This document shows positions 4,507 to 52,993 of a stretch of 64,000 nt of DNA, piece by piece; position 1 is the first letter of the stretch; every line of letters begins with the position of its first letter. The notes under the pieces are model-generated. The model saw nothing but the letters and a program-made list of their open reading frames with translations. It was not told where the DNA came from and searched no databases. Both the position numbers and the translations under genes were made by a program. Origin of the DNA: Podarcis muralis (Eukaryota). The DNA is taken from the NCBI RefSeq assembly GCF_964188315.1, contig NC_135658.1, positions 22,072,001 to 22,136,000 on the forward strand, given 5' to 3'.

Positions 4507-6714
4507 TTATGATGGAGAGATTCTTGAACTCTTTCTTCTAACCTTGTTGCTTAGCACAAACCTGTAATACACACCCATGCCAACGGCAGCAGTCACTGTG
4601 GAAAGGACCAACACACTTCCTACAATACTACCTACAATGACACCATTCCAGTTTTTTGAAATTGGTCCACTGTCAATGCTGCCCCCATATCCTTTCTTTA
4701 GACAGTCAGGAGGGGCCCAACCATAAGAACAATGGCAGTGTTTGTGGTTGTTGCATATTCCCCTATTATGGCACTTTGTGGCATTGCAATCATACTGCAA
4801 GAGGGACACGTTCTTGCATTCCCTACGAATGCACATCATGCCAGTGCCACAAGGTGTACCGTCTTCCACTGCTCCAAGATCAGCTACTTCCATTCCACTG
4901 TGGTAGTCTGTAGCCCAGCAGTTACTTTTGCCAATGGTGGTTTGAATGATGGTTTGGTGTTCCTCCAAGGTAGGTAGCCCATAAATATTACTACACTGCA
5001 TTCGGCCACATAGAATATTTTCAGCTTTGCATTTCTTAAAAATACCATGTTCAAGGCCACAGTTGCCAAAGCGATCACCTCGAGCATTCAGTCCTCTGAA
5101 ACAATCCTCTGAAGCTCGTATGGTTTTCTTGCCAAATATATTTTCGCACTGCCCATTAGGAGTACTACAACGACCATGATAGCAATAGACTCCATCACCA
5201 CAAGGGGCACCATCTTGTACATAAACATCTTCTGGACACTGATCTGAAGTCCCAGTGCAAAATTCAGGAAGATCACACATACTAATACTCTTTCTGCAAA
5301 TGGATCCAGGGGGACGGTACTTGCACCTGTCACAGCACAGTCCAGAAGAACAATTGGCACATGGACGCAACGTGCAATCTGGCCTGCAACAATAATTCAA
5401 TCGACACTGTTCAGTTGTACCACAGTCGCATTGCTCTCCTTTTTCCACTACTTTGTTGCCACAGTATTCGAGGTTATACATTTCATCAGGGTCTGGTGGA
5501 ATCAACAAGCAAGGTGAGTCCTTTTGATTGAAATACTCATAGTAACTGCAGTTGCTAAACTTATCAACCTCTGAGTGCCAAGCAGACATAATGCAGGCGC
5601 GTCGGTCACATTTACAGACCAAATCATCATGGTTCATACCAAGATTATGTCCAAATTCATGGGCAAATAGCACAGAAAAATCAAACAAATTGAAATTCTT
5701 TGATACTATAACACCAGTAGCCCAATACTCACTACAAATTTCTCCTACATATGCTAATCCAATAGGACCTATAAATGACCTGTGTACAATTAAGTGAGCA
5801 GCATCATTCTTTAGATGGTTAAGTAGAGTGTTATGTCTCCATATACTGAAAGCATTAAGTGTGGCTCCGATACCGTGATCAACATCTATGAGGTTCTTTT
5901 CCGTCCATATCTCCAGTCCTGCTACAGACACGTCAAGTAAAAGTGGCTCAAAAAATGAATTTACAGCATGGATAGCCTCAAGAATTTTCAGAGCAATATC
6001 AGTTTCATTTTTATTAAACTTAACATATCGTTCATGCTCCACCACAAATGCCACTTCTGCATGTCTCTTGTGTGGCCACCAGAGTCCTGCTGGAGCACTT
6101 TTGACAGCCACATGCTCTGCATCGTGGATCATGGCCTCTTGACGCCTTTGCTCTTCCTCCGTCAACCCACACCTCATGTGCATGGCACCCTCCTCTATTT
6201 CCAGTCGATACACCACATGCTGAAAGGTAGCAGATGGCTGGACAGGTTCAATTTGATATGTCTCATTGTTAAGTTGTAACAGGCCCCTGAGTCCGCCTGA
6301 GCAAGTGCTGAGAGTGAGTGAAGAGAGAGGCTTGTCCTGTATGAAGCCACTGTAGAAACAATCATCCCTGATGTAATGATAGTCACCCAGGAGGTCCCCT
6401 TCCTTATTGTACGTGAAGATGGGGAAGCGTTTAGGAACAATGCCCTTCTTCTGCTTGAGATGCACCACCCGGCCCTTCCCCTCAATCTGTAGCAGGTAGC
6501 TGACATCCTGGGTTTCCTGTAGTCCATACCTGAAGCTCAGTCTCCTTGGGATGGTCACCTCATAAGAGGCATACCTAAAGCCCTGAGGTGGTGTCTGGCC
6601 ACCAGTCACACTCAAGAGATTCCTCAAGAACATAATGAACAGCCATGCCAGGCTGCCACTCATTTTCCAAGAAAGAGGAAAGAATCTCTTGAAGCACTGC
6701 CTCTGGCATCTCAT
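4507..6714 (-). CDS. ADAM metalloprotease-disintegrin, ADAM20/21/30-like, single coding exon (copy 1; likely start is the ATG at 6663)
   Basis: Uninterrupted 735-aa ORF. It has a signal peptide (MSGSLAWLFIMFLRNLLSVTGG), a prodomain with cysteine-switch-like MRCGLT, zinc motif HEFGHNLGMNHD (5629-5661) and Met-turn CIMS. These are followed by a disintegrin domain (CGNKVVEKGEQCDCG...MCDLPEFC), Cys-rich and EGF-like domains, a TM helix and a short basic tail. Confidence 0.95.
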   Translation of the reverse strand: MRCQRQCFKRFFPLSWKMSGSLAWLFIMFLRNLLSVTGGQTPPQGFRYASYEVTIPRRLSFRYGLQETQDVSYLLQIEGKGRVVHLKQKKGIVPKRFPIFTYNKEGDLLGDYHYIRDDCFYSGFIQDKPLSSLTLSTCSGGLRGLLQLNNETYQIEPVQPSATFQHVVYRLEIEEGAMHMRCGLTEEEQRRQEAMIHDAEHVAVKSAPAGLWWPHKRHAEVAFVVEHERYVKFNKNETDIALKILEAIHAVNSFFEPLLLDVSVAGLEIWTEKNLIDVDHGIGATLNAFSIWRHNTLLNHLKNDAAHLIVHRSFIGPIGLAYVGEICSEYWATGVIVSKNFNLFDFSVLFAHEFGHNLGMNHDDLVCKCDRRACIMSAWHSEVDKFSNCSYYEYFNQKDSPCLLIPPDPDEMYNLEYCGNKVVEKGEQCDCGTTEQCRLNYCCRPDCTLRPCANCSSGLCCDRCKYRPPGSICRKSISMCDLPEFCTGTSDQCPEDVYVQDGAPCGDGVYCYHGRCSTPNGQCENIFGKKTIRASEDCFRGLNARGDRFGNCGLEHGIFKKCKAENILCGRMQCSNIYGLPTLEEHQTIIQTTIGKSNCWATDYHSGMEVADLGAVEDGTPCGTGMMCIRRECKNVSLLQYDCNATKCHNRGICNNHKHCHCSYGWAPPDCLKKGYGGSIDSGPISKNWNGVIVGSIVGSVLVLSTVTAAVGMGVYYRFVLSNKVRRKSSRISPS

Positions 6715-6716
6715 CC

Positions 6717-6755
6717 CTGAAAGGGAAGCTCCAAACAGTTGTTACCAGGTTAGTA
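6717..6755 (-). promoter_or_regulatory. Branch point, polypyrimidine tract and 3' splice acceptor of the ADAM coding exon (copy 1; homologues before copies 2-5)
   Basis: Minus strand reads TACTAAC(6755-6749)...CTTCCCTTTCAG|GGATG. The same arrangement occurs at 13378-13416, 20164-20202 and 26990-27028. The acceptor is kept but the branch point is deleted at 53047-53079. Confidence 0.75.
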
Positions 6756-6936
6756 GATAGATGGGAAGGAGGCTATGTGTGAATCAGAAGAGGAGGAAGA
6801 TACGTTGCCTAGCAACTGCCAGGGTGCTCCATCTGTGGAATGTGGGTGGAGCTTGGAGGATCAAAGATGGAACAGAATGGCAGAGGAAGAACAGGGACGA
6901 AAACATTCCTAAGAAGTTTCTGCCTGGGAGGGTTGC

Positions 6937-7236
6937 AGGTTTGTCATTGGTTTTCTCCCAAGAAGCAGGTGTCTTTTAATTTTGTGACTGCTGTCACCAT
7001 CTGCAGTGATCATGGAGCCCAAGAAAGTAAAATCTCTCACTGCCTCCATTTCTTCCCCTTCTATTTGCCAGGAGGTGATGGGCCCAGTGACCATGGTCTT
7101 AGTTTTTTTGATGTTGAGCTTCATACCGTATTTTGCGCTCTCCTCTTTCACCCTTATTAAAAGGTTCTTTAATTCCTCCTCACTTTCTGCCATCAAGGTT
7201 GTGTCATCTGCATATCGAAGGTTGTTGATATTTCTT
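6937..7236 (-). mobile_element. BovB (RTE) LINE RT fragment
   Basis: Translates to NINNLRYADDTTLMAESEEELKNLLIRVKEESAKYGMKLNIKKTK (YADD motif of RTE/BovB). It has the same 5' truncation point as 14241-15038. Confidence 0.9.
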
Positions 7237-8289
7237 AGTTTTATCAAACCGTGTATTGGCTTCCCTAAAAATAGTTCATTTTGAGGAATACCCCAATTTA
7301 TTTCAAAATCTGCTCTGAGAATTAGAAATAAGCTAGAATACTGTTTACTTGGTTTCCCAGTATTAGATTTATAAAATCTTTAATCTGTGAGGTGCAAAAA
7401 ATATTTTGCATTTATATGCACTGGTGTTTAAGGACACAAATCTTGAGCCATTTTTACATGTAATCTAAGTTAAATACAGGGGCATTTGTAAACCGTGTAT
7501 AAACTCAGAGGGCAAATAAGGGCTACCTTTTGACCTGGGTGAAAGCTGGCTTCCCATAATATTCTCCCTCACAGTTGTGTTGTGTCTCAATACTTCAATT
7601 AGAGATAGGCAAGTTATTCTGAGCTCACTTCAGATTAACTTGAAAATGTTCTGAGACCTTCCCCCCAAATCAGAAGATCTTATTGAAAGATGGAACTAAT
7701 CAGCACATAGAGCTGGACATTCAGCTAGTGGAATATTTTCTCCCCAAAGCCACAAAGATCAAAAAAGCAAAGCTCTAATTTGCTAATTATTAGAATCAGC
7801 CAGACTGTCCATTACATGATTGGGGGGGGGGGGGGAATTGACAGCGTACTGGTATAACAAAATGTGGAATATTGTTCTAGTGGGAAAACTGTCAAACAAA
7901 GTAAGAATAACCAGGGTTGGGTTTTTTGTTTTTTTAAAGGCCAAGCAACAGTATGCCAGGGTGAAAAGCCCAGGGGATCATGGGTAAGCTGGGCATTGTA
8001 GGCAACTAAGTGAAATTCAGAGTCGAAGGAAAGCAATGGGCATAAGATGATCCAGTCCATTAATTGCAAAAGGTCTACTCTGAGTATGACTCCAGCTCAA
8101 GGGTTTTATAAATCTCATATCTCCTTTGAAGCCAGATTTTACTGCACTGGCACCCATGGCAGTTGCCATGAGCACGGATCCAATTCTCCTGGTCTTTCCC
8201 TCGTGGTCTGCAATGCTCGGTGTCAGATAGTGTGAGAAAGACAGTCATGCAAGAGATGATATGATAGAGGAGTATGAAACAGTATCCCT

Positions 8290-8425
8290 CGGGAGGTGGT
8301 GGACTTTCCTTCCTTGGAGGTTTTTAAGCAGAGGTTGGATGACCCTCTGTCATGGATGCTTTTGTTGAGATTCCTGCATTGCAAGGAGTTGGACTAGTTG
8401 AACCTTGAGTCCCTTCCAACCCATT
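8290..8425 (+). mobile_element. CR1 LINE 3'-end fragment (duplicated at ~15865-16000 and ~22650-22785)
   Basis: GGTGGTGGACTTTCCTTCCTTGGAGGTTTTTAAGCAGAGGTTGGATG...GGACTAG matches the squamate CR1 3' terminus. Confidence 0.7.
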
Positions 8426-8635
8426 ATTGTATGGAGAAAGAAGGCCAGAACATGAAGAAATTCAATGAAGCTGAAGGATGGAAGATTCAGGGCAGACAGA
8501 ACAATTTACATAGTGCATATTTAAACTATAGAATTTGTTCTCAAAAGGTGCAGTGATAGTCACCAACTTTGGTTGCTTTTTAGAGGATTAGACAAATTCC
8601 TAGCACATAAGGATATTAACATCTACGAGCCACAA

Positions 8636-8892
8636 TAGAAGGAGGAGGAGGAGGAGTCTGGACTTGATAGCCCACCTTTCACTCCCCTTAAGGAGTCTCA
8701 AATTTGCTAACCATCTCCTTTCCCTTCCTCCCCAACAACAAACACTCTGTGAGGTGAGTGAGGCTGAGAGACTTCAGAGAAGTGTGATTAGCCCAAGGTC
8801 ACCCAACAGCTGCATGTGGAGGAGCGGGGAAATGAACCCGGTTCACCAGATTACGAGTCCACCACTCTTAACCACGACACTATACTGGCTCT
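8636..8892 (-). mobile_element. tRNA-derived SINE, Squam3-like
   Basis: The reverse complement starts AGAGCCAGT...GTGGTTAAGAGTGGTGGACTCGTAATCTGGTGAACCGGGTTC and ends in a (CTC/CTT)n tail. Paralogous copies are at 16211-16466 and 22979-23240. Confidence 0.8.
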
Positions 8893-9029
8893 GTATGACC
8901 TCCAGTGTTGGAGCCAGTATGGCTCTGAACAGGGCCAGCCCACCTATGGGGCAAGGTGAGGCGACCACCTCAGGTAAGGTTGATTTGATTTGTGATGTAG
9001 ATCTTCACTCCCCCATTTCTTCCCAGTGG

Positions 9030-9539
9030 TGTCATGGACAGGGCAGAGGAGGAAGAATGGTAGAGACCACCGCTGCAGGCGTTGACTAGAGAGGAGGAAC
9101 CGGCAGGTAGCATAGACCTCCAGGAGTGATTTGGCACAGAGCATACATGTAAGGGAGATGAGGGCAAAAGGGGAGAGGAGGAGGAGGAGGAGGAGGAGGA
9201 GGAGGAGGAGGAGGAGGAGGAGGAGGAGAACGTGGACAGCATTCAGCAGAAGGAGGCTGAGCAGCAGTTGAATGAGATGCTGTCGCTGGAGAGTATCCCT
9301 GCCCCAAACCAGGGATTTGCTGAGTACAGTCAAACAGAGAGCTCAGAGGCAACTGACTCATACCAGTCACAGTCAGAGGCAGGAGGAGAAGTCAGATGAA
9401 CAGGAAAGTAACGAAGAAGGGGGGTGGAACTTCACTCAGGGCAACATTAGGTGCATCTTGAATTCTTCTCTGCAAATTCTATTATAAGCAGAACTGAAAA
9501 AACTTGCTGTTTCTCTATCTCGCAGCCTTCCTGGGAATC
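9030..9539 (+). mobile_element. LTR-like element (Gypsy-type solo LTR remnant) carried in each repeat unit
   Basis: Starts TGTCATGGACA and has a purine-rich body with a (GAG)n tract and a TATA-like TATTATAAGC (~9480). Copies start at 16617 and 23569. No clean CA end or TSD was found. Confidence 0.5.
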
Positions 9540-10559: not shown

Positions 10560-11167
10560 AGCTTTAATGAAAAGATTGCACCCTCAAATATGTTACATAA
10601 CATTCACCATTATTTCCATCATAGCTTTTTGAAATATTATGTGTTGGTGGTTTTATAATATTTTTAATATATTGTCTCATTTCAACACTAACATTTCTGC
10701 CAACACAGTTATTGGTATAATGTTTGCAATGGCTTTCTAGACAGATGTGAATTCACTCCACAAACGTACAAATATTGCATTTCAATGGCTTTAGAGGATT
10801 GGGTTGTGATTCTATTCCTGTACACCCTAGGTTGCTTTGGGAGAGGATCCGAGATATCCGAGATACCAGCACTCCTTCCATGCATTTCTTTAGCATGGTA
10901 TGATAACATTTCATTCCACTGTACAGATTTCTCCCATTTACATAGGATAGGACTTCTGTCCTGAACAACAAAGAGACTCTCAACATACTGTGAAAGTATA
11001 GGCAAAGATTTTCATATGTGAATATTTCCCTTTGAGATGAACTAAACCAATGCTTGCAGAGTCAAATATAAGTTATACAATAGTACTCATCATACCCATC
11101 ATACCCTTTTGAAACTTTCTGCATTGTTCACTTCTGTGATCTAGAATGATTTTAGTTCCTCTGTTCA

Positions 11168-13324
11168 TTATGATGGAGAGATTCTTGAACTCTTTCTTCT
11201 AACCTTGTTGCTTAGCACAAACCTGTAATACACACCCATGCCAACAGCAGCAGTCACTGTGGAAAGGACCAACACACTTCCTACAATGCTACCTACAATG
11301 ACACCATTCCAGTTTTTTGAAATTGGCCCACTGTCAATGCTGCCCCCATATCCTTTCTTTAGACAGTCAGGAGGGGCCCAACCATAAGAACAATGGCAGT
11401 GTTTGTGGTTGTTGCATATTCCCCTATTATGGCACTTTGTGGCATTACAATCATACTGCAAGAGGGACACATTCTTGCATTCCCTACGAATACACATCAT
11501 GCCAGTGCCACAAGGTGTACCGTCTTCCACTGCTCCAAGATCAGCTACCTCCATTCCACTGTGGTAGTCTGTAGCCCAGCAGTTACTTTTGCCAATGGTG
11601 GTTTGAATGACGGTTTGGTGTTCCTCCAAGGTAGGTAGCCCATAAATATTACTACACTGCATTCGGCCACATAGAATATTTTCAGCTTTGCATTTCTTAA
11701 AAATACCATGTTCAAGGCCACAGTTGCCAAAGCGATCACCTCGAGCATTCAGTCCTCTGAAACAATCCTCTGAAGCTCGTACGGTTTTCTTGCCAAATAT
11801 ATTTTCGCACTGCCCATTAGGAGTACTACAACGACCATGATAGCAATAGACTCCATCACCGCAAGGGGCACCATCTTGTACATAAACATCTTCTGGACAT
11901 TGGTCTGAAGTCCCAGTGCAAAATTCAGGAAGATCACACATGCTAATACTCTTTCTGCAAATGGATCCAGGGGGACGGTACTTGCACCTGTCACAGCACA
12001 GTCCAGAAGAACAATTGGCACATGGACGCAACGTGCAATCTGGCCTGCAACAATAATCCAATCGACACTGTTCAGTTGTACCACAGTCACATTGCTCTCC
12101 TTTTTCCACTACTTTGTTGCCACAGTATTCGAGGTTATACATTTGATCAGGGTCTGGTGGAATCAACAAGCAAGGTGAGTTCCTTCGATTGAAATAGTCA
12201 TAGTAACTGCAGTTGCTAAACTTATCAACATCTGAGTGCCAAGCAGACATAATGCAGGCACGTCGGTCACATTTACAGACAAAATCATCATGGCTCATAC
12301 CAAGATTATGTCCAAATTCATGGGCAAATAGCACAGAAAAATCAAACAAATTGAAATTCTTTGATACTACAACACCAGTAGCGAATTTCTCACTACAAAT
12401 TTGTCCTACATATGCAATTCCAATAACACCTTTATACGACCTGTATACAATTAAGTGAGCAGCATCATTCTTTAGATGGTTAAGTAGAGTGTTACGTCTC
12501 CATATACTGAAAGCATTAAGTGTGGCTCCGATACTTTTATCAACATCTATGAGGTTCTTTTCCGTCCATATCTCCAGTCCTGCTACAGACACGTCAAGAA
12601 ACAGTGGCTCAAAAAATGAATTTATAACATGGGTGGCCTCAAGAATTTTCAGAGCAATATCAGTTTCATTTTTATCAAATTTAACATATCGTTCATGCTC
12701 CACCACAAATGCCACTTCTGCATGTCTCTTGTGTGGCCACCAGAGACCTGCCGGAGCACTTTTGACAGCCACATGCTCTGTGTCCTGGATCATGGCCTCT
12801 TGACGCCTTTGCTCTTCCTCCGTCAACCCACACCTCATGTGCATGGCACCCTCCTCTATTTCCAGCCGATACACCACATGCTGAAAGGTAGCAGATGGCT
12901 GGACAGGTTCAATTTGATATGTCTCATTGTTAAGTTGTAACAGGCCCCTGAGTCCCCCTGAGCAAGTACTGAGAGTGACTGAAGAGAGAGGCTTCTCCTG
13001 TATGAAACCACTGTAGAAACAATCATCCCTGATGTAATGATAGTCACCCAGCAGGTCCCCTTCCTTATTGTATGTGAAGATGGGGAAGTGTTTAGGAACA
13101 ATGCCCTTCTTCTGCTTGAGATGCACCACCTGGCCCTTCCCCTCAATCTGCAGCAGGTAGCTGACATCCTGGGTTTCCTGTAGTCCATACCTGAAGCTCA
13201 GTCTCCTTGGGATGGTCACCTCATAAGAGGCATACCTAAAGCCCTGAGGTGGTGTCTGGCCACCAGTCACACTCAGGAGATTCCTCAAGAACATAATGAG
13301 CAGCCATGCCAGGCTGCCACTCAT
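11168..13324 (-). CDS. ADAM20/21/30-like metalloprotease-disintegrin (copy 2)
   Basis: 718-aa uninterrupted ORF with HEFGHNLGMSHD and the complete domain set. Confidence 0.95.
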   Translation of the reverse strand: MSGSLAWLLIMFLRNLLSVTGGQTPPQGFRYASYEVTIPRRLSFRYGLQETQDVSYLLQIEGKGQVVHLKQKKGIVPKHFPIFTYNKEGDLLGDYHYIRDDCFYSGFIQEKPLSSVTLSTCSGGLRGLLQLNNETYQIEPVQPSATFQHVVYRLEIEEGAMHMRCGLTEEEQRRQEAMIQDTEHVAVKSAPAGLWWPHKRHAEVAFVVEHERYVKFDKNETDIALKILEATHVINSFFEPLFLDVSVAGLEIWTEKNLIDVDKSIGATLNAFSIWRRNTLLNHLKNDAAHLIVYRSYKGVIGIAYVGQICSEKFATGVVVSKNFNLFDFSVLFAHEFGHNLGMSHDDFVCKCDRRACIMSAWHSDVDKFSNCSYYDYFNRRNSPCLLIPPDPDQMYNLEYCGNKVVEKGEQCDCGTTEQCRLDYCCRPDCTLRPCANCSSGLCCDRCKYRPPGSICRKSISMCDLPEFCTGTSDQCPEDVYVQDGAPCGDGVYCYHGRCSTPNGQCENIFGKKTVRASEDCFRGLNARGDRFGNCGLEHGIFKKCKAENILCGRMQCSNIYGLPTLEEHQTVIQTTIGKSNCWATDYHSGMEVADLGAVEDGTPCGTGMMCIRRECKNVSLLQYDCNATKCHNRGICNNHKHCHCSYGWAPPDCLKKGYGGSIDSGPISKNWNGVIVGSIVGSVLVLSTVTAAVGMGVYYRFVLSNKVRRKSSRISPS

Positions 13325-14240
13325 TTTCCAAGAAAGAGGAAATTATCTCTTGAAGCACCACTTCTGGCATCTCATCCCTGAAAGGGAAGCCCCAAACAGT
13401 TGTTACCAGGTTAGTAGATAGATGGGAAGGAGGCTATATGTGAATTAGAAGAGGAGGGAGATATGTTGCCTAGCAACTGCCAGTGTGCTCCGTCTGTGGA
13501 ATGTGGGTGGAGCTTGGAGGATCAAAGATGGAACAGAATGGTAGAGGAAAAGAAGGTTCCTAAGAGGTTTTTGCCTGTGAGGGTTGCATGAAGAAGAGCA
13601 AAAAAGGAGAGAGTCTTATAGCACCCCATGGACGAACAAGTTCTATTTCAGCATCAGTCAGTGGACATGAGCTCACTTCATACATTGGATGGGTCATAAT
13701 CCTCAGTTGTCAGGTATGGAACATTAAAAGTACTTTCTGTGACAATTCAACTAGTGTTTAAATATATGCAAAACATAAAAATAACTGGTGATAGAACAAT
13801 CATCTTTGCATTGCTGAGTTCCTTTTCAGCTCTGAGGCAGAACCTCCTCTTCACTTGGCCAGTTGAAGAAGCCCAGGTGAGCAAAGTGCTTCTTTCGGTC
13901 ACAGTTTTTACTCGTCCACCTCATTCAGAGAAGGGAAGCCAGCAGGGAGTGCTCAGTCAAAACCACCCGGATGAGTGAATGGCCCCTCTAATCCCTTCCA
14001 ATCCCCTCAGCATCTTCCTTTTTTGCACACCAAACTGTGGCCTCCCTTAATGGGAGATTCCATGCGCCCCTTTTGACTGGAGATACAACAAGAGATTCAT
14101 TCTGGATCTTCTGCGTACAATATATGGTGTACACCACTGAACTATGGATCTTCCCATCCTTAAATAAGTAAGGGAAATGCAAACTCTTAGGGTCATGTGA
14201 AATATTTTAGAAAGGGGATCTAGCATTTCCAGAGAGCATC

Positions 14241-15038
14241 TTGTTGTTGTGTAGTCGTTTAGTCGTGTCCGACTCTTTGTGAACTCATGGACCAGAGCAT
14301 GCCAAGCACTCCTGTCTTCCACTGCCTCCCACAGTTTGGTCTAACTCATGCTAGTAGCTTCAATAACACTGTCCAACCATCTCGTCCTCTGTTGTCCCCT
14401 TCTCCTTGTGCCCTCAATCTTTCCCAGCATCGTGGTCTTTTCCAGGGAGTCTTCTCTTCTCATGAGGTGGCCAAAGTACTGAAGCCTCAGCTTCAGAATC
14501 TATCCTTCCAGTGAGCACTCAGTGCTGATTTCTTTCAGAACGGATAGGTTTGATTTTTTGCAGTCCATGGAACTCTCAAGAGTCTCCTCCAGCACCATAA
14601 TTCAAAAGCATCAATTCTTCGGCGATCAGCCTTCTTTATGGTCCAGCTCTCACTTCCATACATCACTACTGGGAAAGCCATAGCTTTAACTACATGGACC
14701 TTTGTTGGCAAGGTGATGTCTCTGGTTTAAGATGCTGTCTAGGTTTCTCATTGGTTTTCCCAAGAAGCAGGTGTCTTTTAATTTTGTGACTGCTGTCACC
14801 ATCTGCAGTGATCATGGAGCCCAAGAAAGTAAAATCTCTCACTGCCTCCATTTCTTCCCCTTCTATTTGCCAGGAGGTGATGGGCCCAGTGGCCATGATC
14901 TTAGTTTTTTTGATGTTGAGCTTCATACCGTATTTTGCACTCTCCTCTTTCACCCTCATTAAAAGGTTCTTTAATTCCTCCTCACCTTCTGTCATCAAGG
15001 TTGTGTCATCTGTATATCTGAGGTTGTTGATATTTCTT
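14241..15038 (-). mobile_element. BovB (RTE) LINE, 5'-truncated
   Basis: Contains the RT end (RYTDDTTLM...) and the BovB 3' end with (CAA)n tail (ttgttgttg at 14241). Confidence 0.9.
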
Positions 15039-16466: not shown

Positions 16467-16616
16467 GTATGATGTCCAGTGTTGGAGCCAGTATGGCTCT
16501 GAACAGGGCCAGCCCACCTATGGGGCAAGGTGAGCCGACCACCTCAGGTAAGGTTGATTTGATTTCCCCACCTTGTTTGTGATGTAGATCTTCACTCCCC
16601 CATTTCTTCCCAGTGG

Positions 16617-17953: not shown

Positions 17954-20110
17954 TTATGATGGAGAGATTCTTGAACTCTTTCTTCTAACCTTGTTGCTTA
18001 GCACAAACCTGTAATACACACCCATGCCAACAGCAGCAGTCACCGTGAAAAGGACTAACACACTTCCTATAATACTACCTACACTGACACCATTCCAGTT
18101 TTTTGAAATTGGCCCACTATCAATGCTGCCTCCATATCCTTTCTTTAGACAGTTAGGAGGGGCCCAACCATAAGAACAATGGCAGTGTTTGTGGTTGTTG
18201 CATATTCCCCTATTATGGCACTTTGTGGCATTGCAATCATACTGCAAGAGGGACACATTCTTGCATTCCCTACTAATACACATCATGCCAGTGCCACAAG
18301 GTGTACCGTCTTCCACTGCTCCAAGATCAGCTACCTCCATTCCACTGTGGTAGTCTGTAGCCCAGCAGTTACTTTTGCCAATGGTGGTTTGAATGATGGT
18401 TTGGTGTTCCTCCAAGGTAGGTACACTATGGATATTACTACACTGCATTCTGCCACATAGAATATTTTCAGCTTTGCATTTCTTAAAAATACCATGTTCA
18501 AGGCCACAATTTCCAAAGCGATCACCTTGAACATTCAGTCCTCTGAAACAATCCTCTGAAGCTCGTACGGTTTTCTTACCAAATATCTTTTCACACTGCC
18601 CATTGGGAGTAGTACAATGACCATGGTAGCAATAGACTCCATCACCGCAAGGGGCACCATCTTGTACATAAACATCTTCTGGACACTGATCTGAAGTCCC
18701 AGTGCAAAACTCAGGCAGGTCACAGATGCCAATACTCTTTCTGCAAATGGATCCAGCGGGACGGTACTTGCACATGGCACAGCACAGTCCAGAAGAACAA
18801 TTGGCACATGGACGCAACGTGCAATCTGGCCTGCAACATCGATCCGATTGACACTGTGCAGCTGAACCGCAGTCACATTGCTCTCCTTTTTCCACTACTT
18901 TGTTCCCACAGTATTCGAGGTTATAGATTTGATCAGGGTCTGGTGGAATCAACAAGCAAGGTGAGTCCTTTCGATTGAAATATCTATGGTAACTGCAGTT
19001 GCTAAACTTATCAGTCCGTGAGTGCCAAGCGGCCATAATGCAGGCACGTCGATCACATTTACAGTCCGAACTATCATGGGGCATACCAAGATTATGCCCA
19101 AATTCATGGGCGAATAGCACAGAAAAATCAAACAAATTGAAATATATTGATACTTCAAGAGCAGTGGCCCAATATTTACTACAAATTTGTCCTACATATG
19201 CTAGTCCGATAGTACTTCCATACGACCTGTATACAATTAAGTGAGCAGCATCATTCTTTAGATGGTTAAGTAGAGTGCTACGGCTCCATATACTAAAAGC
19301 TTTAAGTGTGGCACCTATTCCATCATCAACATCTATGAGGTTCTTTTCTGACCATATCTCCAGTCCTGCTATAGACACTTCAACTAAAAATGGCTCAAAA
19401 AATGAATTTACCATATGGATGGTCTCAAGAAGTTTCATAGCAATATCAGTTTCATTTTTATTAAACTTAACATATCGTTCATGCTCCACCACAAATGCCA
19501 CTTCTGCATGTCTCTTGTGTGGCCACCAGAGTCCTGCTGGAGCACTTTTGACAGCCACATGCTCTGCGTCCTGGATCATGGCCTCTTGACGCCTTTGCTC
19601 TTCCTCCGTCAACCCACACCTCATGTGCATGGCACCCTCCTCTATTTCCAGCTGATACACCACATGCTGAAAGGTAGCAGATGGCTGGACAGGTTCAATT
19701 TGATATGTCTCATTGTTAAGTTGTAACAGGCCCCTGAGTCCCCCTGAGCAAGTGCTGATAGTGACTGAAGAGAGAGGCTTGTCCTGTATGAAGCCACTGT
19801 AGAAACAATCATCACTGATGTAATGATAGTCACCCAGGAGGTCCCCTTCCTTATTGTATGTGAAGATGGGGAAGTGTTTAGGAACAATGCCCTTCTTCTG
19901 CTTGAGATGCACCACCTGGCCCTTCCCCTCAATCTGCAGCAGGTAGCTGACATCCAGGGTTTCCTGTAGTCCATACCTGAAGCTCAGTTTCCTTGGGATG
20001 GTCACCTCATAAGAGGCATACCTAAAGCCCTGAGGTGGTGTCTGGCCACGGGTCTCAATCAGGAGATTCCTCAAGAACATAATGAGCAGCCATGCCAGAC
20101 TGCCACTCAT
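17954..20110 (-). CDS. ADAM20/21/30-like metalloprotease-disintegrin (copy 3)
   Basis: 718-aa uninterrupted ORF with HEFGHNLGMPHD and the complete domain set. Confidence 0.95.
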   Translation of the reverse strand: MSGSLAWLLIMFLRNLLIETRGQTPPQGFRYASYEVTIPRKLSFRYGLQETLDVSYLLQIEGKGQVVHLKQKKGIVPKHFPIFTYNKEGDLLGDYHYISDDCFYSGFIQDKPLSSVTISTCSGGLRGLLQLNNETYQIEPVQPSATFQHVVYQLEIEEGAMHMRCGLTEEEQRRQEAMIQDAEHVAVKSAPAGLWWPHKRHAEVAFVVEHERYVKFNKNETDIAMKLLETIHMVNSFFEPFLVEVSIAGLEIWSEKNLIDVDDGIGATLKAFSIWSRSTLLNHLKNDAAHLIVYRSYGSTIGLAYVGQICSKYWATALEVSIYFNLFDFSVLFAHEFGHNLGMPHDSSDCKCDRRACIMAAWHSRTDKFSNCSYHRYFNRKDSPCLLIPPDPDQIYNLEYCGNKVVEKGEQCDCGSAAQCQSDRCCRPDCTLRPCANCSSGLCCAMCKYRPAGSICRKSIGICDLPEFCTGTSDQCPEDVYVQDGAPCGDGVYCYHGHCTTPNGQCEKIFGKKTVRASEDCFRGLNVQGDRFGNCGLEHGIFKKCKAENILCGRMQCSNIHSVPTLEEHQTIIQTTIGKSNCWATDYHSGMEVADLGAVEDGTPCGTGMMCISRECKNVSLLQYDCNATKCHNRGICNNHKHCHCSYGWAPPNCLKKGYGGSIDSGPISKNWNGVSVGSIIGSVLVLFTVTAAVGMGVYYRFVLSNKVRRKSSRISPS

Positions 20111-21519
20111 TTTCCAAGAAAGAGGAAAGAAGCTCTTGAAGCACCACCTCTGGCATCTTATCCCTGAAAGGGAAGCTCCAAACAGTTGTTACCAGGTTAG
20201 TAGATAGATGGGAAGGAGGCTATATGTGAATTAGAAGAGGAGGGAGATATGTTGCCTAGCAACTGCCAGTGTGCTCCGTCTGTGGAATGTGGGTGGAGCT
20301 TCGAGGATCAAAGAAGGAACAGAATGGCAGAGGAAGAGCAGGGAAGAAAATATTCCTAAGAAGTTTCTGCCTGGGAGGGTTGCAGGAAGAAGAGGGAAAA
20401 AAGAGAGTCTTATAGCACCCCATGGACGAACAAGTTCTATTTCAGCATCAGTCAGTGGACATGAGCTCACTTCATACATTGGATGGGTCATAATCCTCTG
20501 TTGTCACGTATGGAACATTAAAAGTACTTTCTGTGACAATTCAACTAGTGTTTAAATGTATGCAAAACATAAAAATAACTGGTGATAGAACAATCATCTT
20601 TGCATTGCTGAGTTCCTTTTCAGCTCTGAGGCAAAAGCTCCTCTTCACTTGCCCAGGTGAAGAAGCCCAGGTGAGCAATGTGCTTCTTCTAGCAACAGTT
20701 TTTACTCATCCACCTCATTTATATGCACTGGTGTTTTACGTGTAATGGGAGTTAAATACAGGGGGATTTGAAAACCCTGTATAAGCTCAGAGGGCAAATA
20801 AGGGCTACCTTTTGACCTCGGTGAAAGCTGGTTTCCCATAATATTCTCCCTCACAGTTGTGTTGTGTCTGAATACTTCAATTAGAGATAGGCAAGTTATT
20901 CTGAGCTCACTTCAGATTAACTTGAAAATGTTCTGAGACCTTCCCCCCAAATCAGAAGATCTTATTGAAAGATAGAACTAATCAGCACATAGAGCTGGAT
21001 CTTCAGCTAGTGGAATATTTTCTCCCCAAAGCTACAAAGAACTAAAAAGCAATGCTCTAATTTGCTACTTATTAGAATAAGCCAGACTGACCATTACATG
21101 ATGGTGGGGGGGGGGGGATGACAGCCTACTGGTATAACAAAATGTGGAATATTGTGCTAGTGGGAAAACTGGCAAACAAAGTAAGAATAACCAAGGTCGT
21201 TGTTGTTGTTTTTAAGGCCAAGCTTCTTGATGGAATAGTTTGATTTTCTTATATACATTACAAGGCAGGAATCATCCTGGACAACAGTATGCGAGGGTGA
21301 AAAAGCCCAGGGGATCATGGGTAAGCTGGGCATTGTAGGCAACTAAGTGAAATTCAGAGTCGAAGGAAAGCAATGGGCATAATCCGTCCATAAATTGCAG
21401 AAGGTCTACTCTGAGTATGACTCCAGCTCAAGGGTTTTATAAATCTCATATCTCCATGATTCTATGGAGAAACAAGACTAGAACATGAAGACATTCAGTG
21501 AAGCTGAAGGATGGAAGAT

Positions 21520-23512: not shown

Positions 23513-23568
23513 GATTTCCCCACCTTGTTTGTGATGTAGATCTTCACTCTCCCATTTCTTCCCAGTGG

Positions 23569-24779: not shown

Positions 24780-26987
24780 TTATGATGGAGAGATTCTTGA
24801 ACTCTTTCTTCTAACCTTCTTACTTAGCACAAACCTGTAATACATACCCATGCCAACAGCAGCAGTTACCATGGAAAGGACTAACACACTTCCTACAATA
24901 CTACCTACACTGACACCATTCCAGTTTTTTGAAATTGGCCCACTGTCAATGCTGCCCCCATATCCTTTCTTTAGACAGTCAGGAGGGGCCCAACCATAAG
25001 AACAATGGCAGTGTTTGTGGTTGTTGCATATTCCCCTATTATGGCACTTTGTGGCATTGCAATCATACTGCAAGAGGGACACGTTCTTGCATTCCCTACG
25101 AATACACATCATGCCAGTGCCACAAGGTGTACCGTCTTCCACTGCTCCAAGATCAGCTACTTCCATTCCACTGTGGTAGTCTATAGCCCAGCAGTTACTT
25201 TTGCCAATGGTGGTTTGAATGATGGTTTGGTGTTCCTCCAAGGTAGGTACCCCATAAATATTACTACACTGCATTCGGCCACATAGAATATTTTCAGCAT
25301 TGCATTTCTTTAAAATACCATGCTCAAGGCCACAATTGCCAAAGCGATCACCTTGAACATTCAGTCCTCTGAAACAATCCTCTGAAGCTCGTACGGTTTT
25401 CTTGCCAAATATCTTTTCACACTGCCCATTAGGAGTACTACAACGGCCATGATAGCAATAGACTCCATCACCACAAGGGGCACCGTCTTGTACATAAACA
25501 TCTTCTGGACATTGGCCTGAGGTTCCAGTGCAAAATTCAGGAAGATCACACATACTAATACTCTTTCTGCAAATGGATCCAGCGGGACGGTACTTGCACC
25601 TGGCACAACACAGTCCAGAAGAACAATTGGCACATGGACGCAACGTGCAATCTGGCCTGCAACAATAATCCAATCGACACTGTTCAGTTGTACCACAGTC
25701 ACATTGCTCTCCTTTTTCAACTACTTTGTTGCCACAGTATTCGAGGTTATACATTTGATCAGGGTCTGGTGGAATCAACAAGCAAGGTGAGTCCTTTCGA
25801 TTGAAATACCTATGGTAACTGCAGTTGCTAAACTTATCAGTCCGTGAGTGCCAAGCAGCCATAATGCAGGCACGTCGGTCACATTTACAGTCCGAACTAT
25901 CATGGGGTATGCCAAGATTATGCCCAAATTCATGAGCAAATAGCACAGAAAAATCAAACAAATTGAAATATATTGATACTTCAAGAGCAGTGGCCCAATA
26001 TTTACTACAAATTTGTCCTACATATGCTAGTCCGATAGTACTTCCATACGACCTGTATACAATTAAGTGAGCAGCATCATTCTTTAGATGGTTAAGGAGA
26101 GTGCTACGGCTCCATATACTAAAAGCTTTAAGTGTGGCACCTATTCCACCATCAACATCTATGAGGTTCTTTTCTGACCATATCTCCAGTCCTGCTATAG
26201 ACACTTCAACTAAAAATGGCTCAAAAAATGAATTTACCATATGGATGGTCTCAAGAAGTTTCAAAGCAATATCAGTTTCATTTTTATTAAACTTAACATA
26301 TCGTTCATGCTCCACCACAAATGCCACTTCTGCATGTCTCTTGTGTGGCCACCAGAGTTCTGCTGGAGGACTTCTGACAGCCACATGCTTTCTGTCTTGG
26401 ATCATGGCCTCTTGATTCCTTTGCTCTTCCTCCGTCAACCCACACCTCATGTGCATGGCACCCTCCTCTATTTCCAGCCGATACACCACATGCTGAAAGG
26501 TAGCAGATGGCTGGATAGGTTCAATTTGATATGTCTCATTGTTAAGTTGTAACAGGCCCCTGAGTCCCCCAGAGCAAGTGCTGAGAGTGACTGAAGAGAG
26601 AGGCTTGTCCTGTATGAAGCCACTGTAGAAACAATCATCCCTGATGTAATGATAGTCATTCAGGAGGTCCCCTTCCTTATTGTATGTGAAGATGGGGAAG
26701 TGTTTAGGAACAATGCCCTTCTTCTGCTTGAGATGCACCACCCGACCCTTCCCCTCAATCTGTAGCAGGTAGCTGACATCCAGGGTTTCCTGTAGTCCAT
26801 ACCTGAAGCTCAGTCTCCTTGGGATGGTCACCTCATAAGAGGCATACCTAAAGCCCTGAGGTGGTGTCTGGCCACCAGTCGCACTCAGGAGATTCCTCAA
26901 GAACATAATGAGCAGCCATGCCAGGCTGCCACTCATTTTCCCAGAAAGAGGAAAGAATCTCTTGAAGCACCACCTCTGGCATCTCAT
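24780..26987 (-). CDS. ADAM20/21/30-like metalloprotease-disintegrin (copy 4; likely start is the ATG at 26936)
   Basis: 735-aa uninterrupted ORF with HEFGHNLGIPHD and the complete domain set. Confidence 0.95.
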   Translation of the reverse strand: MRCQRWCFKRFFPLSGKMSGSLAWLLIMFLRNLLSATGGQTPPQGFRYASYEVTIPRRLSFRYGLQETLDVSYLLQIEGKGRVVHLKQKKGIVPKHFPIFTYNKEGDLLNDYHYIRDDCFYSGFIQDKPLSSVTLSTCSGGLRGLLQLNNETYQIEPIQPSATFQHVVYRLEIEEGAMHMRCGLTEEEQRNQEAMIQDRKHVAVRSPPAELWWPHKRHAEVAFVVEHERYVKFNKNETDIALKLLETIHMVNSFFEPFLVEVSIAGLEIWSEKNLIDVDGGIGATLKAFSIWSRSTLLNHLKNDAAHLIVYRSYGSTIGLAYVGQICSKYWATALEVSIYFNLFDFSVLFAHEFGHNLGIPHDSSDCKCDRRACIMAAWHSRTDKFSNCSYHRYFNRKDSPCLLIPPDPDQMYNLEYCGNKVVEKGEQCDCGTTEQCRLDYCCRPDCTLRPCANCSSGLCCARCKYRPAGSICRKSISMCDLPEFCTGTSGQCPEDVYVQDGAPCGDGVYCYHGRCSTPNGQCEKIFGKKTVRASEDCFRGLNVQGDRFGNCGLEHGILKKCNAENILCGRMQCSNIYGVPTLEEHQTIIQTTIGKSNCWAIDYHSGMEVADLGAVEDGTPCGTGMMCIRRECKNVSLLQYDCNATKCHNRGICNNHKHCHCSYGWAPPDCLKKGYGGSIDSGPISKNWNGVSVGSIVGSVLVLSMVTAAVGMGMYYRFVLSKKVRRKSSRISPS

Positions 26988-32783: not shown

Positions 32784-32787
<4 letters not shown>

Positions 32788-47744: not shown

Positions 47745-50700
47745 AATTAAAACATGAGGCTTCCATCAAAAACAAGGTGGAAGGAAGACTCCAGGTGCAG
47801 GGAAATAAGTTTGCTGGTAAGAGTCAGAGGCTTCCTTCACTCTATTCCATCACCCCTTCAGCAGCTCAGGAATATAGCCACTCCTCCCAATTTTGTGCTG
47901 TCTGCATATCGGATGAGCATCCCCTCACTTCTTTCATCCAAGTCATTTATAATGACGTGCACAACTGGCAGTGCACTTAAAAGCTCCCAGTTGTGCATTG
48001 GAAGCCATGTCTCTATCTGTCCCACACCTGATATATGTCAACAGGTGTGGGGCAGGTGGCCATGATTTGGGGGAAATGACCTCATAGGCCACATCTGAAG
48101 CGCCAGGAGCGCCAACTCTGGCCTGCATGTGGGAGGTTCCCTATCCCGTTGTAGCTGGTGTCCCAGCCAAACTTAGTTAAAGGAGCTCTGGGTCAACCAG
48201 GCTGCCTGAGATTCCAGTGGCAGAAGTGGGTGAGCAGAAGTGGGTGAGCTGTCACTCCATATTCCAAGGCTACTAGACATGTCCAGTCCTTGTTGGGCTG
48301 CTTCTGAGAGCATTGCTCCTGCTTTGGGGGTGGGAATGCACTTCTAAAGTCCATGGGACTTCACTGAGCACGCTGATACCTTCACCCCGCCCCCACCAAT
48401 TGTTTCATTATGCCTCTGCTTTGGCAACAGTCCTGTTGGGACTCACCACTTAAGTTTACTATTAGTAGTAGTTGTAAAGCTAAAAGAGAGACGAGCCTCT
48501 TTCTAATCTTCCCCAATAAGCTAGCTTCCTTTGAATTCCTTTAGATGTTTCAGCTGATCAAATCCACCTTGGAATTTGTCTAACAGGTGAAAAATCAGTG
48601 GTAGCTCTAATTAAAACCATGAGTGACTTCATCCTGACAAACCGTTTCACAGGCAGTTGAAACGAGCGCTGATACGACTGAAAACTCCATGGCAACTTCA
48701 AGTGAATTTATTTTTGTTTGGCTGGGGGGGGGGGATGTATTTGGCACAAGCATAGTTTTGCACACGGACTATCAGAGGATAGCTCAAATTATTGTTTTGA
48801 TGCAAGGTCATTTTTTAAAAAAAAGTAAATGGAGAATTTAGCGATTTAACTTCCCTGATACAGGACAGCAGTGTTAGGTATCTTCACAGCTAATTATACC
48901 TACCATTTCTACATGCCCCTGGAGGGAATTAATTACAGTGATATTCAGAAGTGAAGTTTACCTGCTTTGAATATGAAAAGATCTCAATTCAGTTCACACA
49001 AGTTGTGCATAGTAGGTACACGCACTGCACTGAATATTCTACTAACAACTCTCTAAAGGAATAATTAATTCAGCTTATGCTGACCTAGAGCATTATCTTT
49101 CCTGTATTCTTCCCCAAAAACACCGAATTCTCCATAGAATGCTACACAGAGACTACATTATTAAGGACTGGCATTTAAGCTCCTAAGCTTTCAAGTTAAC
49201 GTATTAAGAAGGGCTTGCTTCTCAGAGTAAGAAAATCTAGAACTTGCAAAAGGAATACAATAACCTTTCGTGTTAACCTTGATAAGCGTTCAGTCTACCT
49301 GCACAAAACGTTCATCCCTGGAATGGAAAAAATAAATCTTAAGATATTCACTGTGTTCTAGGGAAGCAGGGGTTTTTTATGATTCAAGACTGAACATGCT
49401 GGGACACACGCAACACAATTTGGTAACTGGAATAAATGATGCAAATTATAAATGTTTCCATTAATGCATTTAATCTCCATTTTCATTATTTTGAACCTGT
49501 AATAGCAAAACTGCCTTACAATGAGTCAGACCTTTCATCCATCCAAACCAATATCGTGCAATATGGCAAAGGATCTCGAGGGACACAGGTCACTTTCAGA
49601 CTGTCAGTATTTTGCAAGTGGGATTGTGCAATTAAACTGGACTAAAAAGCACTTGGGTGCTCTGACATTCAAATTTGTTTTTTAAATGGATTCTCTTTAG
49701 TGATTAGAGGAGTGATGGGGAAATGCAGAACCTTGGCACAAACAAATCAAGATGAATGCTCAATAAGCAGGTCATCTGGGGGATCCCGCAGGCTCTCTGG
49801 CATCTCAGTGGCTCTTCTAGCCATTCTGCTACCTGAGAACCTTTTGAATGGAGTCACAAAAATACATTCATCCTGGACCTTCTGCATAAAAAAAAAATAA
49901 GGGCTCAGCCACTGAACTATGACTCTTCCTGTCCTTAACTAGGTAAGGGAAGTTAAAACTCTCAGGGGAATGTGAAACATTTCAGAAAGGGGATGTACCA
50001 TTATCAGAGAGCACCCTTACCTGCTAGTTTTATCCAAAAGTGCTTTGGCCTCTCTAAAAATAAGATCTTCTAACCATGTAGCATTCCTTTTTAAAGACAG
50101 GTTTCCAATCACTGACTACCTTCCAATGGCTAAAAGGACATGATTCTGTGTTAAAGCACAGAGAGATGCTCTAAATATATGAAACTATTTTCTCCTTGTG
50201 GATAAATTAAAGATTATCCTGTGTGGCAAATTTTATAAACAAGGTGCTAAACAAACATAAAACTTTAATGAAAAGATTGCACCCTCAAATATGCTACATA
50301 ACATTCACCATTATTTCCATTATAGCTTTTTGAAATATTATGTGTTGGTGGTTTTGTAATATTTTTAATAAACTATCTCATTTCAACATTAACATTTGTG
50401 TCGACATAATTATCAGAACAATTTTTGCAATGGCTTTCTAGACAGATGTGAATTCACTTCACAAAAATACCAGGTTATGATTCTGTCCCTGTACACCCAA
50501 GGTTACTTTGGGAGAGAATCTGAGATATCCGAGATACCAGCACTACTTCCATGCATTTCTTTAGCATGGTATGATAATATTCCATTCCACTGGACAGATT
50601 TCTCCCACTCAACATAGGATAGGACTTCTGTCCTGAACAACAAAGAGACTCTCAACATAAAGTGAAAGTATAGGCAAATATTTTCATATGTGAATATTTC

Positions 50701-50824
50701 CCTTTGAGATGAACTGAACTAATGCTTACAGAGTCAAAAATATGTTATATAATAGTGCTCATTATACCCATCATACTCTTTTGAAACTTTCTGCATTGTT
50801 CACTTCTGTGATCTAGAGTGGTTT

Positions 50825-52993
50825 TCATTCCTCTGTTGATTCTGAGGGAGAGATTCTTAAACTCATTCTTCTAACCTTGTTACGTAGCACAAACCTGTAA
50901 CAAACACCCATGCCAACAGCAGCAGTCACTGTGGAAAGGACCAACACACTTCCTACAATGCTACCTACACTGACACCATTCCAGTTTTTTGAAATTGGCC
51001 CACTGTCAATGCTGCCCCCATATCCTTCCTTTAGACAGTCAGGAGGGGCCCAACCATAAGAACAATGGCAGTGTTTGTGGTTGTTGCATATTCCCCTATT
51101 ATGGCACTTTGTGGCATTGCAATCATACTGCAAGAGGGACACATTCTTGCATTCCCTACGAATACACATCATGCCAGTGCCACAAGGTGTACCGTCTTCC
51201 ACTGCTCCAAGATCAGCTACCTCCATTCCACTGTGGTAGTCTGTAGCCCAGCAGTTACTTTTGCCAATGGTGGTTTGAATGATGGTTTGGTGTTCCTCCA
51301 AGGTAGGTAGCCCATAAATATTACTACACTGCATTCGGCCACATAGAATATTTTCAGCTTTGCATTTCTTAAAAATACCATGTTCAAGGCCACAGTTGCC
51401 AAAGCGATCACCTCGAGCATTCAGTCCTCTGAAACAATCCTGTGAAGCTCGTACGGTTTTCTTGCCAAATATCTTTTCGCACTGCCCATTAGGAGTACTA
51501 CAACGACCATGATAGCAATAGACTCCATCACCGCAAGGGGCACCATCTTGTACATAAACATCTTCTGGACATTGGTCTGAAGTCCCAGTGCAAAATTCAG
51601 GAAGATCACACATACTAATACTCTTTCTGCAAATGGATCCAGCGGGACGGTACTTGCACCTGGCACAGCACAGTCCAGAAGAACAATTGGCAAATGGATG
51701 CAATGTGCAATCTGGCCTGCAACATCGATCCGATTGACACTGTGCAGCTGAACCACAGTCACATTGCTCTCCTTTTTCCACTACTTTGTTCCCACAGTAT
51801 TTGAGTTTATACATTTGATCAGGGTCTGGTGGAATCAACAAGCAAGGTGAGTCCTTTAGATTGAAATATTTATGGTAACTGCAGTTGCTAAACTTATCAG
51901 TCCGTGAGTACAAAGCAGACATAATGCAGGCACGTCGATCACATGTACAGTCTGGTTCATCATGGCTCATACCAAGATTATGTCCAAATTCATGGGCAAA
52001 AAGTACAGAAAAATCAAACAAATTGAAATTTCTTGATACTTCAACACCAGTAGCCCTGTTATCACAAATTTCTGCTACATATGCTCGTCCAAGATTCCTT
52101 CCATACGACCTGTATACAATTAAGTGAGCAGCATCATTCTTTAGATGGTTAAGTAGAATGTCATGTCTCCATACAGTAAAAGCTTTAAGTGTCCTTCCTA
52201 AAGTTTTACCAATATCTATGAGGTTCTTTTCCGTCCATATCTCCAGTCCTGCTACAGATACTTCAACCAAAAATGGCTCAAAAAATGAATTTACCATATG
52301 GATGGTCTCGAGAAGTTTCATAGCTATATCAGTTTCATTTTTATTAAACTTAACGTATCGTTCATGCTCCACCACAAATGCCACTTCTGCATGTCTCTTG
52401 TGTGGCCACCAGAGTTCTGCTGGAGGACTTCTGACAGCCACTTGCTTTCTGTCTTGGATCACGGCCTCTTGATGCCTTTGCTCTTCCTCCGTCAACCCAC
52501 ACCTCATGTGCATGGCACCCTCCTCTGTTTCCAGTCGATACACCACATGCTGAAAGGTAGCAGATGGCTGGACAGGTTCAATTTGATATGTCTCATTGTT
52601 AAGTTGTAACAGGCCCCTGAGTCCCTCTGAGCAAGTGCTGAGAGTGACTGAAGAGAGAGGCTTGTCCTGTATGAAACCACTGTATAAACAATCATCCCTG
52701 ATGTAATGATAGTCAACCTGGAGGTCCCCTTCCTGATTGTACGTAAAGATGGGGAAGTCTTTAGGAACAATGCCCTTCTTCTGCTGGAGATGCACCACCT
52801 GGCCCTTCCCCTCAATCTGCAGCAGGTAGCTGACATACCGGGTTTCCTGTAGTCCATACCTAAAGCTCAGTTTCCTTGGAATGGTCACCTCATAAGAGGC
52901 ATACCTAAAGCCCTGAGGTGGTGTCTGGCCACCAGTCTCACTCAGGAGATTCCTCAAGAACATAATGAGCAGCCATGCCAGGCTGCCATTCAT
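50825..52993 (-). CDS. ADAM20/21/30-like metalloprotease-disintegrin (copy 5, most diverged)
   Basis: 722-aa uninterrupted ORF with HEFGHNLGMSHD. It has a one-codon deletion in the protease domain (ICDNRATG) and a tail extended by ESTEE. Confidence 0.93.
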   Translation of the reverse strand: MNGSLAWLLIMFLRNLLSETGGQTPPQGFRYASYEVTIPRKLSFRYGLQETRYVSYLLQIEGKGQVVHLQQKKGIVPKDFPIFTYNQEGDLQVDYHYIRDDCLYSGFIQDKPLSSVTLSTCSEGLRGLLQLNNETYQIEPVQPSATFQHVVYRLETEEGAMHMRCGLTEEEQRHQEAVIQDRKQVAVRSPPAELWWPHKRHAEVAFVVEHERYVKFNKNETDIAMKLLETIHMVNSFFEPFLVEVSVAGLEIWTEKNLIDIGKTLGRTLKAFTVWRHDILLNHLKNDAAHLIVYRSYGRNLGRAYVAEICDNRATGVEVSRNFNLFDFSVLFAHEFGHNLGMSHDEPDCTCDRRACIMSALYSRTDKFSNCSYHKYFNLKDSPCLLIPPDPDQMYKLKYCGNKVVEKGEQCDCGSAAQCQSDRCCRPDCTLHPFANCSSGLCCARCKYRPAGSICRKSISMCDLPEFCTGTSDQCPEDVYVQDGAPCGDGVYCYHGRCSTPNGQCEKIFGKKTVRASQDCFRGLNARGDRFGNCGLEHGIFKKCKAENILCGRMQCSNIYGLPTLEEHQTIIQTTIGKSNCWATDYHSGMEVADLGAVEDGTPCGTGMMCIRRECKNVSLLQYDCNATKCHNRGICNNHKHCHCSYGWAPPDCLKEGYGGSIDSGPISKNWNGVSVGSIVGSVLVLSTVTAAVGMGVCYRFVLRNKVRRMSLRISPSESTEE

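Follow-up and report, generated by a model that had tools for sequence, protein, structure and literature searches.

A 64-kb stretch of the Podarcis muralis genome, referred to below as the window, carries five complete single-exon ADAM open reading frames (ORFs) in tandem on the minus strand (c1 to c5), and we read them as part of a lacertid array of intron-less ADAM20/21-like genes with a mosaic history. Comparison with relatives shows that a catalytic core of ~170 codons has stayed unexchanged between three types, arranged in the gene order C-B-A, and tracks three lineages. The same comparison shows that the prodomain and the disintegrin, cysteine-rich, EGF-like, transmembrane and tail regions have passed between paralogues through gene conversion and follow the species. 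On this reading, which we consider probable, the catalytic domains would have been pushed to different substrate preferences. The genes and their protease domains lie at the following positions of the window.

c1, 4507-6714, minus strand: type A; ORF of 735 residues from an upstream ATG, with the likely start Met at 6663 giving 718 residues
c2, 11168-13324, minus strand: type A; 718 residues
c3, 17954-20110, minus strand: type B; 718 residues
c4, 24780-26987, minus strand: type B; likely start at 26936 giving 718 residues
c5, 50825-52993, minus strand: type C; 722 residues, with a protease domain one codon shorter
5464-6063, minus strand: protease domain of c1, codons 201-400; conversion does not reach this segment
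12125-12724 (c2), 18911-19510 (c3), 25737-26336 (c4) and 51797-52393 (c5), minus strand: equivalent protease domains

The upstream ATG adds 17 residues in both c1 and c4, and public 718-residue models begin MSGSL. Genes c1 to c4 follow one another at intervals of ~6.7 kb, and in gene orientation c5 is 24 kb upstream; a tblastn search of the window found no further ADAM fragments. An earlier note on this DNA had described a five-gene array of catalytically intact ADAM proteases, and the motifs and ORFs bear this out in all five copies, each of which contains the zinc-binding motif HEFGHNLGxxHD (335-346), the CIM Met-turn (357-359) and the MRCG cysteine switch (163). Pfam domains follow the order Pep_M12B_propep, Reprolysin, Disintegrin and ADAM_CR; they score above the cut-off in c1 and c5, and all five copies align end to end. 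Each copy also has, by sequence, an EGF-like module, a single transmembrane segment and a tail of 18-22 residues. The junction between the prodomain and the catalytic domain reads PHKR and departs from the canonical RxxR furin site. The coding sequence is intron-less, with uninterrupted ORFs of 718-722 residues and no joints in RNA contigs across c2. The disintegrin loop shows a non-canonical MCD in place of ECD or RGD; at c1 residue 462 in this loop (SxCD), the residue before CD is M, I, T or Y among lacertid copies, and the position was flagged by a site model made unreliable by recombination.

An AlphaFold 2 (AF2) model of the catalytic domain was built from a 116-sequence alignment, with a predicted local distance difference test score (pLDDT) of 88, and replaced a single-sequence model discarded at pLDDT 30. 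The model has the adamalysin fold and reaches a Foldseek TM-score of 0.9 to P-I venom enzymes, ADAM33 and ADAM8. In the 718-residue numbering, strand beta-4 spans 302-304, the active-site helix 326-340, an irregular lower subdomain 341-370 and the C-terminal helix 371-380.

Codon and tree analyses used 14 genes, namely the five window copies and nine fetched relatives (four from P. raffonei, three from Lacerta agilis and two from Zootoca vivipara); database entries of P. lilfordi and P. muralis were compared at the protein level only. The window proteins are near-identical to P. muralis entries, and homologues in P. raffonei, P. lilfordi, L. agilis and Z. vivipara are annotated ADAM20-like or ADAM21-like. 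These are genes already annotated as ADAM20/21-like, ordinary members of a known group. Outside the venom enzymes, the top structural match in Swiss-Prot is human ADAM20, with 37% protease-domain identity; this and the annotation names make ADAM20/21-type genes candidate closest relatives of the array.

By protease domain, type A comprises c1, c2, Pr_123 and La_140; type B comprises c3, c4, two P. raffonei genes, La_003 and Zv_142; and type C comprises c5, Pr_137, La_141 and Zv_004. In gene orientation the window reads c5 (C), c4 and c3 (B), and c2 and c1 (A), with A and B each duplicated. P. raffonei and Lacerta keep the C-B-A order and Zootoca shows C-B, with copy numbers from two (Zootoca) to five. 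No type A gene was found in Zootoca, from which two genes were fetched, and no second, c1-type gene was found within 10 kb downstream of the single type A gene of P. raffonei (L002, downstream of 12157). All 14 genes, from four species, have intact ORFs and catalytic motifs. The type B and C cleft segments are nearly unchanged across genera, and RSYGSTIGLA is identical from Podarcis to Zootoca. When outgroups are added to the tree, the three types make up one clade confined to lacertids, with a single Rhineura gene as its sister. The gene trees show the three catalytic types to be old: all predate the split of Podarcis and Lacerta, and B and C also predate the split from Zootoca. Comparison across lacertid genomes, which the earlier note had proposed, finds types common to Podarcis and Lacerta; B and C have been conserved since. 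Among the protein entries (P0034 and P0125), the second type A protein of P. lilfordi is truncated to 467 residues, and an older model of c1 from P. muralis carries a low-quality flag; in the present window, by contrast, c1 is intact.

The mosaic history is seen most directly in partition trees of the 14 genes, which cluster the protease domain by type, and the prodomain and the disintegrin-to-C-terminus part by species or genus. In approximately unbiased (AU) tests of the protease domain, the type tree was ahead by a log-likelihood difference (delta lnL) of 179, with a p-AU of 2e-9 for the species tree. The species tree was ahead by 115 in the prodomain and by 175 in the disintegrin-to-C-terminus part, and the type tree was rejected in both. 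Sliding parsimony confined the type signal to ~codons 225-400. Blocks of informative sites switch partner within the window ('45' at nt 500-599, '35' at nt 1200-1299), and, by a permutation runs test, copies of different type share conversion-like tracts 100-220 nt long, of which one example is given here.

4889-5108, minus strand: conversion tract in which c1 = c5, coding nt ~1555-1774 (approximate bounds); permutation runs test p = 0.0005

Between the syntenic orthologues c5 and Pr_137, synonymous divergence (dS) is 0.019 in the protease domain versus 0.118 from the disintegrin domain to the C-terminus. Between types, the protease domain has ~4 times the nonsynonymous divergence (dN) of the disintegrin-to-C-terminus part, and dS is similar in the two. 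From the AU tests and the c5/Pr_137 contrast, the shared adhesion scaffold described in the earlier note therefore largely reflects concerted evolution. The similarity of the scaffold is real, but its cause is conversion within lineages as well as purifying constraint (pairwise Nei-Gojobori dN/dS, or omega, of 0.07-0.72 for disintegrin to C-terminus), not constraint alone.

The differences among the window's copies fall mainly on the catalytic domain. The residue counts of the earlier note for c1 versus c2 were reproduced exactly (7 in signal peptide plus prodomain, 25 in the protease domain and 3 from disintegrin to C-terminus), and replacements between these two copies are concentrated in the protease domain as it had claimed. 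The strings that it listed for three variable segments (the one before AYV, the residues after the third His and the loop after the Met-turn) are all present in the copies, and NLFDFSVLFAHEFGHNLG is unchanged across all five. Its codon count of nine replaced against one synonymous was likewise recovered, with 14 nucleotide differences in total, when the following region was compared with 12362-12461 of c2.

5701-5800, minus strand: bulge and edge-strand region of c1, residues 294-319

Pairwise dN/dS (Nei-Gojobori) in the protease domain is 0.6-1.4 for all pairs except c3-c4 (0.15), with c1 versus c2 at 1.42. Non-coding flanks of the repeat units diverge by 5-13%, and the middle of the protease domain by 13-20% between types. 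An ectopic donor for the c1 edge-strand cluster was considered and rejected, as no squamate paralogue resembles the segment and only one synonymous change lies alongside.

Selection was examined with our own Goldman-Yang codon likelihood program (F3x4) on the protease partition, which has one coherent tree. With all 14 sequences, the M0 omega of this partition is 0.72. The comparison of M1a with M2a gave a likelihood ratio test statistic (LRT, 2 delta lnL) of 47.8 with ~6% of sites at omega 6.4, and M7/M8 and M8a/M8 gave 47.2 and 47.1. Each half of the protease domain is significant separately, the highest LRT in 40 null simulations under M1a was 8.3, and the window's five copies alone gave 31.9. 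By type, the site-model LRT is 17.1 in A, marginal in B (6.3) and 0 in C. Branch omegas are 1.93 on the three stems between types, 1.20 within A, 0.49 within B and 0.41 within C (p = 0.001 versus one ratio). Branch-site tests were significant for the inter-type stems (p = 0.008; sites 347 and 366) and for type A (p = 2e-4; sites 233, 263, 298, 300, 303, 313 and 314). The branch estimates show that replacement change was fastest on the branches between types and within type A, and that B and C have been conserved since. Site models also signal selection in the prodomain (2 delta lnL 23.6) and the disintegrin-to-C-terminus part (42.2), which we distrust in view of the recombination in both partitions; of the eight sites flagged in the disintegrin-to-C-terminus part, four (416, 421, 422 and 424) fall inside a mosaic block, 416-424, in which two haplotypes are shuffled among paralogues.

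Several results weigh against adaptive divergence of the catalytic domain. When gamma rate variation among sites is allowed, the null model fits far better and the LRT for the 14 sequences falls about five-fold to 8.5 (p = 0.014), with M1a plus gamma (lnL -2277.8) ahead of M2a without gamma (-2279.1); much of the class with omega above 1 could therefore be hypervariable surface positions. The flagged positions are in fact hypervariable across 116 squamate homologues, and the stem omega is not significantly above 1 (p = 0.087). Multi-nucleotide codon changes inflate branch-site tests, and four of the nine codons replaced between c1 and c2 at 5701-5800 carry double changes. Outside the protease domain, too, M0 gives high omegas (prodomain 0.71, disintegrin to C-terminus 0.50). 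Positive selection, as the earlier note proposed, is thus upheld to the extent that a class with omega above 1 occurs in a conversion-free partition, with sites in all three variable segments, but the signal is model-dependent, dropping from 47 to 8.5 with gamma. Because of this drop, the hypervariability in homologues and the double changes, we regard the codon models as moderate support for positive selection in the catalytic domain.

The earlier note further held that the genes diversify specifically at the substrate-binding cleft. In close structural relatives, the divergent lower subdomain forms a pocket wall and the QDHSK-equivalent segment walls S3' (PMC4885070), and the loops that flank the Met-turn determine which targets are cut (PMC7399193). 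By homology, sites 298/300/303, 347/348 and 365/366 lie in cleft-forming elements and site 344 adjoins the third His. The selected sites thus include the edge strand and the Met-turn loops. The other selected sites, 233, 263-267, 313/314 and 376, may lie in the cleft or away from it. A cleft set of 38 residues was defined beforehand by homology; among the five copies, 17 of these 38 are variable compared with 47 of the 162 residues elsewhere (p = 0.08), and enrichment of selected sites in the set is weak (odds ratio 2.2-3.8, p 0.38-0.016). The omega of the cleft set (0.61) is not above that of the rest (0.76), which counts against a cleft focus, and 50 of the 64 variable residues of the protease domain lie outside the three highlighted segments. 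'Specifically at the cleft' is therefore overstated. A higher enrichment of variable sites in the three highlighted segments (odds ratio 5.2) was rejected as circular, since these segments had been chosen for their variability.

Taken at this strength, the results would fit a history in which the catalytic domains were driven toward different substrate preferences after duplication. Part of the change would fall in the bulge and edge strand and in the loops on either side of the Met-turn, elements that in related enzymes give the cleft and the S1' and S3' pockets their shape. Selection may weed out conversion that would erase the catalytic differences, the divergence itself may prevent it, or both may act.

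A neutral mosaic would account for much of the same pattern. The catalytic domains would then be older since conversion misses them, and weakly constrained, the class with omega above 1 would combine hypervariable surface sites with multi-nucleotide mutations, and there would be no adaptive difference in specificity. The better fit of M1a with gamma, the fall of the LRT, the hypervariability of the flagged positions across the wider family, the high omega throughout the gene and the unelevated cleft set are all as this account expects. However, the LRT remains significant with gamma in three data sets, namely the 14 sequences, the window's five copies (6.9, p = 0.032) and type A (8.8, p = 0.0125), and the ~4-fold higher inter-type dN in the protease domain occurs at similar dS. 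The later conservation of B and C, with RSYGSTIGLA kept from Podarcis to Zootoca, argues for differences that bear function, and the ORFs and catalytic motifs are kept in all 14 genes. We therefore consider a neutral origin of the catalytic differences unlikely and retain divergence in substrate preference as the better account.

Transcripts are found in a related species. In RNA run X1 (~74 Mb of contigs), c2 is covered over ~10940-13900 at a depth of 30-230 with 2-5% differences; the same run gave no coverage in silent stretches beside c2 and no splice joints over c2. RNA-type runs of the same study (X1-X3 and X25) contain 36-53% of the type B protease-domain words (c3). Types A and B are transcribed in this related species. 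Three RNA-type runs under the species label that best matches the window (X9, X7 and X21) have zero depth on c2, and five further runs of the best-matching label (X30-X34) contain none of the type B words. An acceptor-like motif, ttccctttcag|G, lies at 13360-13400, ~50 nt upstream of the c2 start codon, with an equivalent at 6715-6760 in c1; X1 contigs pass the motif to ~13900 without a joint, and a spliced 5' leader is only putative. A repeat at 14207-14600 (similar copies at 36596-37011 and 41527-41844) reaches a word depth of 10^4 in the contig-based RNA runs X1, X9 and X7 and is the sole part of the stretch with X21 reads (depth 11-127). It has no Rfam match and is probably an abundant transcribed repeat.

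These observations also bear on the arms race suggested by the earlier note, in which all five copies would be in continuing, cleft-focused change linked to gamete recognition on a conserved adhesion scaffold. We consider it very improbable: the c1-c2 omega of 1.42, their nine replaced codons against one near the edge strand, the site and branch-site signals of type A at 298, 300 and 303 and the testis expression of mammalian intron-less ADAMs (PMC4550289) speak for it, but the site signal is marginal in B and nil in C, whose cleft segments are nearly unchanged across genera, the scaffold similarity comes from conversion, most variable residues lie outside the cleft segments, and the runs of the best-matching label lack c2 depth and type B words. 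An ongoing race across the whole array is not supported, since B and C have been conserved (omega 0.4-0.5) after their origin.

Among known systems, the closest are the group I intron-less testicular ADAMs of amniotes (ADAM20, 21, 25, 26, 29, 30 and 34), whose clusters occur in all amniotes including Anolis, the mammalian ones being testis-expressed (PMC4550289). Like these genes, the lizard array is single-exon, has the full ADAM architecture and forms a tandem cluster, the group I clusters having followed retroposition; unlike them, it is a lacertid-specific clade sister to the one Rhineura gene. A reproductive role of the lizard array would be only an analogy drawn from the mammalian intron-less ADAMs. 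In mammalian sperm-surface Adam genes, codon-model signals are tied to duplication and neofunctionalisation, and the signal lies in the adhesion (disintegrin/Cys-rich) domain (PMC3849967). The lizard array resembles them as an ADAM family that has duplicated, evolves fast and gives codon-model signals, but here the signal is cleanest in the catalytic domain, and conversion has homogenised the adhesion part.

The closest solved structures are snake-venom metalloproteinases (acutolysin A, BaP1, catrocollastatin/VAP2B and adamalysin II; E 1e-36, TM-score 0.9, root mean square deviation 1.5-2.0 Å), and the zinc motif, the Met-turn and a disulfide-linked lower subdomain are shared with P-I and P-III venom enzymes. 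Venom metalloproteinases derive from an ADAM28-like gene and are secreted, intron-containing toxins, whereas the lizard genes are membrane-anchored and intron-less, with no sign of venom use. In tandem families with mosaic concerted evolution, conversion homogenises one part of the gene and a functionally divergent segment keeps its orthologous history, and the lizard array shares this pattern. No description of mosaic concerted evolution in ADAM arrays was found in the literature searched, and a search for work on a lizard ADAM20 array or Podarcis testis expression returned nothing relevant.

The spacer between c4 and c5 contains an assembly gap surrounded by transposon remnants.

42837-43016, no strand: assembly gap between c4 and c5, with no ADAM ORF affected

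Its flanks are collinear and in the same orientation in P. raffonei L003, where they end at 20960 and resume at 21094, 133 bp apart. The join across the gap, and with it the order c5...c4, is therefore supported by synteny. The same spacer holds a 676-residue ORF (34549-36579, minus strand) with an RVT_1 domain (E 1e-37) that marks a LINE-type element. Beside the gap, a 297-residue ORF (40637-41530, plus strand) has no Pfam match and is likely a DNA-transposon remnant, with a weak likeness to a RAG1/Transib-like RNase-H-fold transposase in a feature search (scores 0.83-0.95). A second run of N lies at 57142-57875, outside the ADAM array; six listed ORFs at 56967-58026 cross it and are probably artefacts of translating N. 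At 1261-1321 (minus strand), an Rfam tRNA match of 36 bits could be a tRNA gene or a tRNA-derived SINE.

The array opens no new kind of biology. What is new here is its evolutionary mode, with a catalytic module that escapes conversion, three old types and a type A that is still changing. To our knowledge, nearly all vertebrate work on reproductive-type ADAMs concerns the adhesion domains, and a diverging catalytic domain is therefore unusual. As a more tentative possibility, the array may work as a fixed 'cassette' system of three protease specificities, in which selection holds three catalytic modules apart against a background of conversion that allows the adhesion and membrane modules and the prodomain to evolve together. 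Type A would then still be moving towards new specificities, possibly directed at reproductive substrates that evolve fast. If true, this would invert the situation in mammalian sperm ADAMs, whose adhesion domains are the part under selection. Divergence in substrate preference predicts that types A, B and C cleave different sequences and that swapping the bulge and edge strand together with the Met-turn loops would transfer the preference. The array offers a clean natural example of a gene family in which conversion homogenises some modules and one functional module escapes.

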